Origin: Paraphysomonas bandaiensis
Taxonomy: Eukaryota; Protista; Chrysophyceae
Reading direction: 5' to 3'
DNA: 64,000 nucleotides
Assembly (NCBI GenBank): GCA_965644295.1
Contig: CBFFRP010000371.1
Span: 62,001 to 126,000, forward strand
Within the stretch, counting starts at the first letter, position 1. Every line of letters starts with the position of its first letter. This document shows, piece by piece, positions 2,112 to 57,900 of this stretch. The position numbers and the translations under genes are program-made. The notes under the pieces were generated by a model. It worked only from the letters and a program-made list of their open reading frames with translations. It was not told the origin of the DNA and made no database searches.

Positions 2112-4285
2112 AAGTAAAGAGGGTGGAAAAAGAGGAACCGGCTGTGTTTGGTCACTGCTGTAATGAATGCAAGTCCTTAACACTATAGCTACGTAGTCAT
2201 ATAGAGGAGTGGGCTGGGATGTTAGTATACATATACTACAGACTACAGAGGATATAAAAACTGTACTTTGGTACAAAGTTGTGTCCAAATATTGTTGCTC
2301 TTGACATTTTTGGACTTTTTTTCCTTACATGATCGAAAAATGTGATAAAAAGTGAGGAAAAGTGAGGAATAGTTTAAGAAATATTCACTTTTGGTCAAAA
2401 AGTGAGTAGCAATTTGTTCAATAAAGGCATCCTTTGTATATTTTTGTTCCAAGATGCCTCTAATATTGAGACAACAATTATCTGTATTCTATCCGTAGTT
2501 GTATTGCAGTAATATAGACGATATTTACTTCAATTTATATCCGAAAAATATGAGATGCTGACTGAGATGTGTGAGTGGTATCCATAGTAATAGTCATACA
2601 CCATTTCAATATAGATCTCAGGTAGCGGTTTACATTAAAAGGCTAGCAGGCAAAAAGTTGTTGTTATTTTCAGTTTTTACTATCAAATGTGTTCCAAATG
2701 CTACCCCTGGATAATGAACATTACAGGCGAATAACATGCAGTGCTAATATCTACACTACTTCTCAGTCAATGGGCTATGAGTTGACATCAGATGACGCTG
2801 CATGGGCCATTATCTCTGTTGTGAATGATACAGTATCGTGCAGTTCCAGAACACTCTTTGGATATATGTATATTTGGTGCGATATGGATCCTCATCAGTG
2901 TTGCTATTAGGCTTCTGGAGTAGTCGCTGCAGCTAGTTAAGCAAGATGTCGCATCAGAATGACATCCTTCTCAATACCGCAAATGCTTCATAACAACATA
3001 ACCCCGATAATGTTATAAACTGTGTTATCAGAAGATCTGTGATAATAGTGACTTAGTTTACAAAGTCCTGTATGCTACCATATGTCCTTAATATTAGGGC
3101 TAGGAAACAGTATATTGTATACTTTTTGTAAGATAGCATCCCATCGACAGTATTACTGTACGTTTATAGCCGGCCTAACAATAGATATTATATCTATATT
3201 ATATATATCGCAATATGTAATACGTTATAATCATAAATCAGCGATAAAATACATTTTTAATACGAGTTATAAAGATTACATGACGATAACCACAGTGATA
3301 ATCTATGATACTATATACTATACACGAATACTGATTGCAATATATTGTGAGCTAACTTAACAGTAACAATATCGATGGAATTTTTCGTCGGTCGACTAAT
3401 AAATATATTGTTCCCTAGCCCTACTTAACATTACAGACTACACTCTACACTCCTGATATACCATATACGTATCCTATACCGCATTGTCATGGAATGCATA
3501 TAGTTATATTTAACCACGGGCAATAAGTAGGCTATATGCTATATCGTCCCGCTAGGTTGAATTGTAGCGTTTCCTCATGATGTTGAAAACTTAATGTTAG
3601 GTTGCATGGTTGCATAGCTATTAGTAGCTTGCTTTCTGTAATAAGAAATAGGTATTCCCTGATTAACACTAAGGAAAAAAATGAGAATTCATATTGTTTC
3701 AAATGAATAGTATACTGTGTATGCTTAGGAAATAGCAATTACACTATTGTTGAACTCAAACAGTAAACCCCAAAATTTCTATATATAATAGCGACAACAA
3801 ATGTACCTTACCACAAAAGAGTACTGAGGGAAAAGCAACTGTGAGGTGTTGAAATTAGTACATAAGGGTGATGATGAATGAGAATGAGCACTTGTAGTCG
3901 CTCAAAAGGCTTCTTATTGTTTTACATAAAATTTAATATAATATATATATATACCTAATTGAATGAGATGTGAGTAATAATGACATGAGGTACACAATAT
4001 CCTCATAAGCACAATATGGGACCCAAGCCCTGAAAGAGCTGGGTGCTACTGCCCTTAACTACTTATACAGCATCAGATATGGCAGTTAAACTCTCCTGAA
4101 ATAATCTTGAAGTTGTCTCGAAATCCTGGTTATGACTGTACATTGCTTGCATTGACGACATTGTCATCTTCTACAGCAGACGAAGGATGGAATACAACTT
4201 GGTTTGATAATCAGCTTTGTATAGTAGGCTCATGTTGTGGTTCATCTATAATTGTGTACTATAAGAAAATCACATACATACATAT

Positions 4286-54440: not shown

Positions 54441-54913
54441 GTGTGGGTGGAAACCCCTATGGGGCAATAAAAATTCATAGTGCTGCCATAATGATGTTGT
54501 ACAACGGTTATCTTTAGTAAAAGGCGAAAGATAAGTGCGCCTAGTATAACATCAGCAGGATGATTAATTAGAGGGGTCGGTTCGATATATATATGTATGA
54601 ATTTACCCAAAATATTTATTTTGAAAATGGTATATGGACTAATTGGTATACAGGAAATACATTCATATACAGCCAGACCTTTTTGGACATATGGTATGGA
54701 TGTAGTCTACTGTATTCTACTACTGTATACATGTGGGTATACACTAAAATATAGTTGGAAGTGATCCGGATGGTACCTACTCTCATCAGACGAGTGGCGT
54801 GTAGTGGATATGATGTGAGTGGATGTGCAGGTTGCTTGTATAAGTCTAGCAATATACTACATTTAGAAGTCATAATTTTGTTGTAGTAGACAATAAATTA
54901 CTGTTGTTGCATC

Positions 54914-57900
54914 ATGATATATGGTGCATTTTGCTGGCTTGCCTTGTGTGTATCCGCTGGATATGCCGCAGTTGACAAGAGCAGGCTGATTCCATTCTCT
55001 CCTGACTCCGATAAATGCACCAGCATTATCGTCTCCAGAAAGGCCTCTACAGAGGGTCCTATGACCACCCATACGGCAGATTGTGCAAATTGTGATTTCC
55101 GTATCAATAAAGTACCTGCTATGGATTGGAAGAAAGGCGATATGAGGGCTCTGTATGTGTATAAGGGCTCATATCCTGCCATGGTGATTGAGAACCGTGG
55201 CACTACATGGAGTGCTGACAACCTAGAAGGTGAGTTTATTATCCTCTGCTAGTACGTGTATGTAGGTAATGTTTTTGTAGGAACGGCGGAGCAAATTGAG
55301 GCCTGGAAGCAAGAAGAAAGGGATATTACTGGCTACATACCACAGGTAATAGCACAACTATCTGGCAATTCGTGAAATGCTATATCCGATGATAGTTCTA
55401 CATGAGATTTATGACTGTGTAGTGAGATCCATTGTGATGCCAGCTACTCATTACGATTAAAGCATATTAATGCTGAGGATATGTGTCATTCGTCCTGTAT
55501 TCGTGTTTTGTTGAAGTCGTATATTGACTTGCGCACGACAGGTGGAACATACTTACGCCTTGTACGAAGCTGGCTATGGTATCATGAATGAGCACGGACT
55601 TGCCATGGGCGAGTCCACATGTGCATCGTGGCTGTGGGCTGCACCTACAACAGCTGGAGGGAAGGCCAGAGTTGAAGTTAGAGAACTGTCGAAGTAAGTG
55701 CTTACGAGTACACTTATTACTAGTTGGTGTCGTGGATATTATTGGTGATGACGATAGCACATTTTGTCGTGGACAGGAGGTTGGTGGGAGGGAAAAAAGG
55801 GACTGAGTCTCTTCGTGAGATTCGTCTCTCCCTTTGCCTCCTCCTGTGTGCGTCCTGATTGAATGAAGACACATAGCGACCATACTCTCTGAGCCAAACA
55901 CAACATTCACGTGCTTATATTATAACGACGATGATTATTTACTTACTCTTGTTCACCCTAGGATTGCTTTAGAGCGCACTAAGACTGCGAGGGAAGCTAT
56001 CCAACTAATGGGCGACCTTGCTGTTGAGTTGGGATACTATGCGGCAGACTGGAGTGGTGGGGATGGCTCCAAGGGCGAAGGTGGAGAGGCCCTTACAGTA
56101 GTTGATAAGGAAGAGGCTTGGGTTTTCCATGTTACTTCTGATGATACCGGAGAAAGTGCGGTGTGGGCAGCACAAAGAGTTCCTGATGGAGAGGTATATA
56201 TACACAGTTCTGCATACACTCTACATTTCCATCCACTATACAACAGTGAGGTTGTGTTTGGTGATGACGATAGCACATTTTGTCGTGGACAGGAGGTTGG
56301 TGGGAGGGAAAAAAGGGACTGAGTCTCTTCGTGAGATTCGTCTCTCCCTTTGCCTCCTCCTGTGTGCGTCCTGATTGAATGAAGACACATAGCGACCATA
56401 CTCTCTGAGCCAAACACAATACTCACTGCGTATCACTCACTACATATTCAATGTACCTGTTTAAATGACGTGATGGCAATGACGACTCAATTACTGGCCG
56501 GTGGGTCGAGGCAACATCCTTCTGAGTCTCTTCGTGAGATTCGTCGGTGGCCCTTCCCTCCGGCTCTGATTCAATGAAGACAGCAAAGACCATACTCCAC
56601 TCTGAGCCATTCACAGTTTACTTCACACTATCTCTACACGTATAAGTATATGTATATATATGTTTTATATATTCGTGATATGTGGCAATGACGACTCAAT
56701 TACTGGCCGGTGGGTCGAGGCAACATCCTTCTGAGTCTCTTCGTGAGATTCGTCGGTGGCCCTTCCCTCTGGCTCTGATTCAATGAAGACAGCAAAGACC
56801 ATACTCCACTCTGAGCCACTTTATATCACTACTTCACTTTGTCTACTGTTAGCATGAGTGTGTTTCTATACTAATTTGTGATGTGTGTCAGGTGGCTGTC
56901 GTTGCAAATCAGTTTATTATTCGACACATTCACGAGGATAGCGACGACTTTATGTTCTCAAAAAATATATTCAAGGTTGCAGAGCGCGCGGAATTGTGGA
57001 AGCCCTCTGACGGAAAGCTGGACTTCTTGAAGACTTTTGGACCTCAACGTATGCATTCTCCTTATGCAACTCGACGTGTGTGGCGAGTTTTCAGTCTGCT
57101 TGCACCCTCTTTGGAACTCGATCCTGTGACTGACTCTTTTGCATCGGAGTATCCCTTTTCTGTCAAACCCGAGACTGGAAAGCTCAGCAAAGAAGACCTG
57201 ATGCGATTGCAGCGAGATCACTATGAGGGATCGGAGTTCGACTTAACTCAGGGACTCCAGGCTGGACCATATGGTGACCCGGAGAGATGGGATGTTTCCC
57301 CAGTTGATGGCATGGACCTTGCCGATGTTATGGAGGGGTCGTTCGAACGGGCCATTTCTCTTTTCCGAACCTCTTATTCTTTCGTGGCGGTGTCGCGGAA
57401 GCACCTTCCTGATCCGGTATCATCTGTTCTCTGGTTTTCTCAGTATGCTCCAGCCTCTACTACTTACACCCCTTTCTATGTGGCCGCCACTGACGCTCCT
57501 CGTGCATATACTAAGGGATCCCTTTTTAACTACGACCCATCAGTTTCTTTCTGGAACTTTGCTGCTGCTGGTAACTACGCTAATCGGTTCTATATTCACA
57601 CAAAGCAGGTGCTTCAAGATTTGCAGGATCAGCTGGAGAGTGCTTATTCCAAAGAGAGTGCTGATATAGATGCTAAAGCTGCTGCTGTTCTTAATGATTG
57701 TGAGGCCGCTGATGACTGTGACAAACGTGAAGCAATGACCACTGTAGTTGAAATGCTTACTGACTTTACACACGCCAAGGCTGATCAGACTGTACAAGCA
57801 TGGCGTGATTTATTACCAAAGCTTATTACTCGCTTCCATGACGGTTACAGCGCTGAAAATCTGCAGGGTGCCGAGATTACTATGAAGAAGCTCTTTTATC

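Follow-up and report, generated by a model that had tools for sequence, protein, structure and literature searches.

A conserved, previously undescribed family of intronic box C/D snoRNA-like units with a predicted 18S rRNA target in the chrysophyte Paraphysomonas bandaiensis

What kind of RNA is carried by the three long introns of a C69 dipeptidase gene in Paraphysomonas bandaiensis, and what might it act upon? A preliminary description of the locus, made from the DNA alone, placed five box C/D snoRNA-like units in these introns and assigned four of them to an atypical family. The units are followed here through the 64,000-nt stretch of genomic DNA in which the gene lies (the window, whose numbering is used throughout), through the rest of the genome, and through sequences of relatives. 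One unit, X, is by its sequence an ordinary guide, and the other four belong to two types, A and B.

The host gene, its long introns and their RNA

The C69 gene lies on the plus strand, and its last exon carries the Peptidase_C69 domain (E 3.5e-28). Intron 1 is ~50 nt long; introns 2 (55346–55541), 3 (55694–55961) and 4 (56194–56891), all GT..AG, are 196, 268 and 698 nt long, and assembled contigs of three runs splice out these same lengths, which confirms the sizes given in the preliminary description. Unit X resides in intron 2 and A1 in intron 3; intron 4 is polycistronic and hosts A2, B1 and B2 in an A-B-B order, as had been proposed. The branch adenosine of intron 4 is 56874, within UACUAAU. 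A full-length U5 spliceosomal snRNA gene (54452–54560, minus strand; 70.6 bits) lies ~350 nt upstream of the C69 gene start.

Expression was read from assembled contigs of RNA or presumed-RNA runs, in which RNA ends and levels are not readable. Culture run X1 (organism A) contains fully spliced mRNA of the C69 gene, and in a 396-nt contig of the same run 56873 is followed by one odd letter and then by 56194, a junction of the branch adenosine (56874) with the first base of the intron. This back-joint is the lariat-junction signature of intron 4, and its presence in an assembled contig means that the snoRNA-bearing lariat was abundant enough for assembly. Further contigs of run X1 cover 56474–56712, those of a random-primed marine metatranscriptome (run X11) cover 56345–56712, and a single contig of culture run X6 (organism B) covers 56354–56627; RNA of intron 4 accumulates. 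Introns 2 and 3 have no contig coverage of their own, and A1 is indistinguishable from A2 in such data.

Unit X, a large-subunit guide in intron 2

Between the end of the fifth snoRNA-like unit, X (55381–55482, plus strand), and the 3′ splice site of intron 2 there are 59 nt. X has a 6-bp terminal stem (UAUAUCC/GGAUAU), a degenerate box C (AUGAUAG, 55389–55395), a D′ guide (55396–55409) followed by a D′ box AUGA (55411–55414), and a box D CUGA (55473–55476). The 14-nt D′ guide is a perfect complement of the organism's own LSU rRNA (contig C545, 249–262, rRNA strand) in the context ...GAAAUCUCAUGUAGAAC, and methylation is predicted at the C of AAUC. The same guide is retained in relatives L022 (two copies), L023, L024 and L025. 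Judged by these features, X is an ordinary large-subunit methylation guide. The two X-like units of L022 (2800–2895 and 3080–3135) carry the same LSU guide and lie in an upstream intron of that relative's gene; between them there is a weak snR76-like match (2941–3020; 37 bits, below the cut-off).

Anatomy of units A and B

Type A is represented by A1 (55731–55911) and A2 (56244–56428), and type B by B1 (56470–56614) and B2 (56675–56829), all on the plus strand; with their outer stems the A units measure 181 and 185 nt and the B units 145 and 155 nt. Every box and outer stem claimed in the preliminary description can be read directly in the window: a box C AUGACGA (overlapped in type A by a canonical UGAUGA), a D′/C′ element CUGA-N3-A-AUGAAGA, and a box D CUGA. 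In A1, box C lies at 55746–55754, the invariant hairpin at 55805–55823, D′ (CUGA) at 55855–55858, C′ (AUGAAGA) at 55863–55869, the guide at 55876–55888 and box D at 55889–55892; in A2, box C, hairpin, guide and box D are at 56262–56270, 56321–56339, 56392–56404 and 56405–56408. The corresponding parts of B1 are at 56478–56485 (box C, AAUGACGA), 56524–56542, 56588–56598 and 56602–56605, and those of B2 at 56687–56694, 56733–56751, 56797–56807 and 56811–56814. The box D of B2 is 77 nt from the 3′ splice site, which is 62 nt from the end of the B2 outer stem.

A2 has a 10-bp terminal stem in addition to its outer stem and folds with a z-score of -5.6. The outer stems of A1 (55731–55737/55905–55911, with one G·U), A2 (56244–56250/56422–56428) and B2 (56675–56681/56823–56829) all pair, and B1 has a stem of its own (56470–56477/56606–56614). 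Repeat finding aligns 55742–55910 (A1) with 56258–56426 (A2), and 56474–56609 (B1) with 56683–56818 (B2), each at 99% identity; type A versus type B is ~75% identical across the 3′ halves. Since the units are 99% identical inside, yet their flanks are unrelated and in each copy form a different outer stem, we infer that old copies homogenised by gene conversion fit the data better than a very recent duplication. The differing outer stems had been taken earlier as an argument for selection on structure; this is supported, the covariation of the terminal stem between species (below) being the firmer evidence.

Copy number and the search for known families

DNA similarity searches and a covariance model of the A/B family built in this analysis (R1), which scores A1, B1 and B2 at 124, 128 and 133 bits, find only four A/B copies in the 62.5-Mb genome, all of them in the C69 gene. 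The four window copies are the whole genome complement, and thus the units are not a dispersed repeat; the genome-wide transposable-element origin considered in the preliminary description is not what the genome contains. No U3-like locus was recovered in the genome search with R1. A pattern search with the 19-nt apex of the hairpin, allowing at most two mismatches, returned the four A/B copies and one unrelated genome site, on which ground the apex was rejected as a module common to other RNAs. Exact matches to the 19-mer in bacterial and viral collections are coding or lack the boxes and guide: five near-identical phage matches are one repeated coding sequence, and the other four consist of the 19-mer or little more.

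Rfam 15, applied to the whole window at the gathering threshold, reports only U5 and no match on A or B. At E ≤ 10 the best matches on the units reach 11–16 bits with E-values of 2–9, which is noise, and at E ≤ 0.1 nothing falls on the A/B units of five related loci. Full-text searches of the literature for the conserved strings, together with topic searches, returned no description of the family. The earlier suggestion of a possibly undescribed family therefore agrees with both Rfam 15 and the searchable literature, and the A/B family is conserved and previously undescribed.

Relatives that carry the family

Orthologues of the host gene were sought by a word-index protein search in which only the last exon served as query. 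In four other lineages, at 43–66% protein identity, the C69 orthologue carries units of both types at matching intron positions. In L025/L026 (66%) type A lies in the intron after ...RELSK and type B in that after ...VPD(D/G)E, which is also the arrangement of the window, and the L025 intron orthologous to intron 3 also hosts a type A unit; the other orthologues with A and B units are those of L020/L021 (55%), L022 (53%) and L024 (43%). A second, less strict pattern scan of metagenomes found a single contig, the AT-rich L023. Here an intron of a different host gene contains X-like, B-like and A-like units plus another C/D unit; this extra box C/D-like unit (minus strand, 300–215) follows the A-like unit and has AUGAUGC ... 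CUGA with a GGCC/GCC terminal stem. The covariance-model search of relatives that the preliminary description had suggested gives scores of 72–134 bits for units in L020–L026, save for the divergent B-like copy of L023 (35 bits); L034–L040 had no match with R1. The relatives mostly have one A plus one B per genome, and the genome studied here shows only a local doubling of each type; the expansion inferred earlier is not supported.

In L020 and L022 the intron orthologous to intron 4 also hosts a SNORD36 homologue (L020:1713–1794, 33.7 bits, and L022:4808–4886, 49.8 bits; gathering score 30), which by Rfam is absent from intron 4 of the window. In L018/L019, whose protein is 67% identical, introns 3 and 4 are kept at ~50 nt each and contain no snoRNAs. 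The host-protein tree places the carriers in three distinct clades, amid sequences of Mallomonas, Ochromonas and Spumella, and leaves oomycetes outside. These separate clades, together with the empty introns of L018/L019, make the association of A/B units with their host look old and repeatedly lost. Upstream introns of L022 also contain a duplicated stretch of ~140 nt (3650–3790 and 4050–4190), partly common to L020:500–600, which may be a further small RNA.

Conserved boxes, a covarying terminal stem and an invariant hairpin apex

An alignment of 13 units has a mean column identity of 51%. Box C (RUGACGA, the UGA(C)GA columns), box D (C(U/C)GA) and the guide GA(C/U)CAUACUC are invariant in all of them, as is a 19-nt hairpin apex, GAGUCUC-UUCGU-GAGAUUC, which has three changes in one of the 13 units; sites beyond the invariant columns drift between lineages. 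The terminal stem is paired in 92% of cells, and both partners vary in four of its five pairs; its covariation score was not matched in any of 500 shuffles, and when the register is slid, pairing falls to 24–45%. The assignment to the box C/D class made in the preliminary description is borne out by these invariant boxes, this covariation and a guide held in fixed register.

The apex, 7 bp plus a UUCGU loop, belongs to a conserved part of the hairpin of 19–21 nt and is as conserved in sequence as the guide that pairs with rRNA. Its fold is predicted from energy alone, since it shows no covariation; constraint on its sequence is evident, and the absence of covariation is silent about the fold. 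The stem below it is wholly different in sequence between lineages. When compared with shuffled arms, this lower stem is clearly stabilised in the A units of the window (z -2.5 to -2.7) and in both units of L025 (A, z -4.8; B, z -3.6), weakly stabilised in B1 of the window and A of L023, and not stabilised in B2 of the window or in L020, L022 and L024. A long lower stem was thus rejected as a family trait, and the long hairpin is a lineage-specific elaboration of a short conserved one. The earlier reading of a stem-loop in place of the D′ guide stands as regards a hairpin between box C and D′; its length of 70–90 nt holds only for this lineage and that of L025, the C-to-D′ stem-loop region of the other relatives being 40–50 nt, with lower stems that fold no better than shuffled arms. 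In nearly all units a helix closes directly against D′, and box C is followed by ~10–12 unpaired nt that are unconserved between lineages.

What, then, might the apex do? Its distance to D′ varies from 12 to ~35 nt, which rules out a D′ guide. A role as accessory antisense element was rejected: the best pairing of the apex with the rRNA pieces (-18.8 kcal/mol, with LSU only partly assembled) is inside the range of 30 shuffles. Pairing with U3 was likewise set aside, the 19-mer ranking 344 of 500 against shuffles. Nor is a third D-like/C-like box pair (YUGA ... GUGAGAU) favoured: its upstream YU is variable, and a simple hairpin of 7 bp has far greater stability. The CUGA immediately 5′ of the apical hairpin varies in relatives and so does not count as a conserved box. 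At the loop-stem junction there is a UGAG loosely like a CAB box. The most economical guess, and the most likely role, is that the apex is recognised in a sequence-specific way by a protein or RNA partner.

A predicted target in 18S helix 27 that overlaps the U3 site

The organism's own 18S rRNA (L010:891–2686) supplies the numbering used here. The type A guide pairs with 18S 1106–1118 over 13 nt, a G·U pair followed by 12 Watson-Crick pairs, which places U1110 opposite its fifth nucleotide upstream of box D. For type B the pairing covers 1106–1116 (11 nt) in a register shifted by three, such that the fifth nucleotide faces G1107; the type B units of this genome are mismatched at position 3, counted upstream from box D. 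Duplex energies with 18S are -24.3 (A) and -21.4 (B) kcal/mol, and the next best rRNA sites give -12 to -17. Within each type, every lineage has the same register relative to box D, and by the fifth-nucleotide rule this fixed register leads to predicted methylations Um1110 (A) and Gm1107 (B). The paired stretch of 18S forms the 5′ strand of helix 27. We take U1110 and G1107 to correspond to about U1115 and G1112 in yeast, and we know of no Nm at these 18S positions in yeast or human. Arabidopsis SnoR35, unexpressed and unvalidated, was predicted for 18S U1107, which may or may not be the same nucleotide (PMC8053127).

No conserved D′ guide was found across the A/B units compared, and a scan against the own 18S found no second antisense element that brackets a cytidine, and the spacer after box C is unconserved and has no adjacent 18S match. 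The rDNA of this genome is in pieces (contigs C525, C653, C545, C516, C543, C196, C551, C437 and C68, with several partial 18S copies), and the LSU 5′ part (~800 nt) was not recovered, which limits complementarity scans. On C525 an LSU fragment lies directly upstream of an 18S copy.

The GGAGUAUGGUCG stretch complementary to A and B is presumably the same as positions 1111–1122 of yeast 18S. In the yeast processome these nucleotides pair with Box A′ (nucleotides 3–13) of U3 (10.1101/175547). The organism's own U3, found with RF00012, begins with sequence containing GAUCAUACU, which is complementary to 18S ~1104–1117 and close to the A/B guide GACCAUACUC; B units of two relatives read GAUCAUACUC. 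The A/B units and U3 are thus complementary to the same 18S strand, and simultaneous occupancy is impossible. Box A of the own U3 pairs with 18S nucleotides 9–15. Most eukaryotes read GAUCCUG near the 18S 5′ end; here the 18S (L010:891–930) reads GAUUCUG and U3 Box A (L031, minus strand, 1702–1680) reads the complementary CAGAAUC, which may be a compensated pair.

Comparison with known box C/D RNAs

Canonical intronic C/D guides such as U24 and SNORD36 resemble A and B in having boxes C, D′, C′ and D with a terminal stem, an 11–13-nt antisense element that abuts box D, and an intronic position in which the last unit ends 50–75 nt before the 3′ splice site; A and B differ from them in the RUGACGA box C, the lack of a D′ guide, and the invariant 19-nt hairpin on a variable stem between C and D′. 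U14 of yeast and plants has in its Y domain an extra internal stem-loop with conserved non-guide nucleotides, and in this A and B are similar to it; however, the 18S complementarities of U14 (domains A and B, to the 18S 5′ region and the C414 region) are absent, neither a scan against the own 18S nor Rfam giving a U14 match. U3 Box A′ shares its 18S segment with A and B, but U3 lacks a methylation register, lies outside introns, and has a B/C motif and hinge regions. snR4, snR45 and U13 are also long box C/D RNAs with structured interiors, but two antisense elements bracket their target cytidine, whereas A and B have one element in a methylation register. Plant intronic clusters likewise place several snoRNAs in one intron, as seen here (A-B-B) and in relatives (A-B-SNORD36); the present cluster differs in being small and mixed, in a non-ribosomal host gene kept across lineages, and in not being a tandem array of one unit.

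What the A and B units may do

It seems likely that A and B are two ancient paralogues within a single family of intron-encoded box C/D methylation-guide snoRNAs of chrysophyte-like stramenopiles, with an apex that binds a partner and a target that overlaps that of U3. Each unit would be released from the spliced intron, its mature ends presumably defined by both of its stems, terminal and outer, and by the C/D kink-turn. The element just upstream of box D, the sole conserved antisense element, would pair with the 5′ strand of helix 27, and by the fifth-nucleotide rule type A would direct 2′-O-methylation of U1110 and type B that of G1107. D′ and C′, which are 3–4 nt apart like an archaeal K-loop, probably serve only as a second site for the snoRNP proteins, and the hairpin would take the place of the D′ guide, its stem free to vary and its 19-nt apex held invariant. 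Within the small-subunit processome A/B and U3 Box A′ would exclude each other at the same 18S stretch. Several points count against this reading: box C has a C where U is usual, box D is CCGA in several relatives, type B is mismatched close to box D, the apex neither covaries nor matches rRNA or U3 better than shuffled sequences do, and contigs are unable to reveal RNAs of 140–185 nt with defined ends.

The A/B snoRNPs could instead be non-methylating chaperones or placeholders that keep the 5′ strand of helix 27 single-stranded, or exchange it with U3 Box A′, their hairpin docking on the pre-ribosome. The coincidence of the target with the Box A′ site, the lack of a conserved D′ guide, and an invariant non-guide hairpin for which a plain methylation guide offers no explanation all speak for this, and we regard it as rather unlikely, mainly because the register of each type is preserved in all lineages, as selection on the methylated position would predict: a mere clamp needs neither two types for one target nor registers 3 nt apart, and all four boxes are kept as well. 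The preliminary description had likened the family to scaRNAs and to processing or acetylation guides. Guidance of Kre33/NAT10 acetylation (as by snR4, snR45 and U13), or of snRNA modification in Cajal bodies by scaRNAs, would suit the long internal structured region, and the UGAG of the apex loosely recalls a CAB box; however, the only conserved antisense element is an invariant 11–13-nt one at box D that matches 18S perfectly, no cytidine is bracketed, the spacer after box C is unconserved between lineages, and Rfam finds no snR4, snR45 or U13 on A or B. That likeness is not supported, and we consider a role of this kind very improbable. The two near-identical pairs (A1/A2 and B1/B2), which fit inside 1.1 kb, might suggest that the units have no function as RNA and are either mobile or repeated DNA or motifs that match by chance. 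The chance of this appears negligible, given four copies in the genome, orthologous intron positions kept though the host protein has diverged so far, invariant boxes and guide with a covarying terminal stem, and phage and bacterial 19-mer matches that are coding or lack boxes and guide.

If A and B are methylation guides, a more speculative step concerns the hairpin, which could be a new module that docks the snoRNPs to a small-subunit processome factor or RNA and so couples helix 27 modification to the timing of U3 Box A′. We hold this specific role to be improbable; if true, a docking hairpin would make a methylation guide double as an assembly checkpoint or U3 competitor.

Rfam has almost no annotated snoRNAs from stramenopiles, to which the A/B units add a well-supported family; the units also present an association of snoRNAs with a non-ribosomal host gene that has been kept across deep lineages. 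The 19-nt apex, which has no known partner, is a handle for finding a new snoRNP cofactor. The two predicted rRNA methylations lie on the strand with which U3 must pair, and they raise a testable question on the sequence of steps in early 40S assembly.
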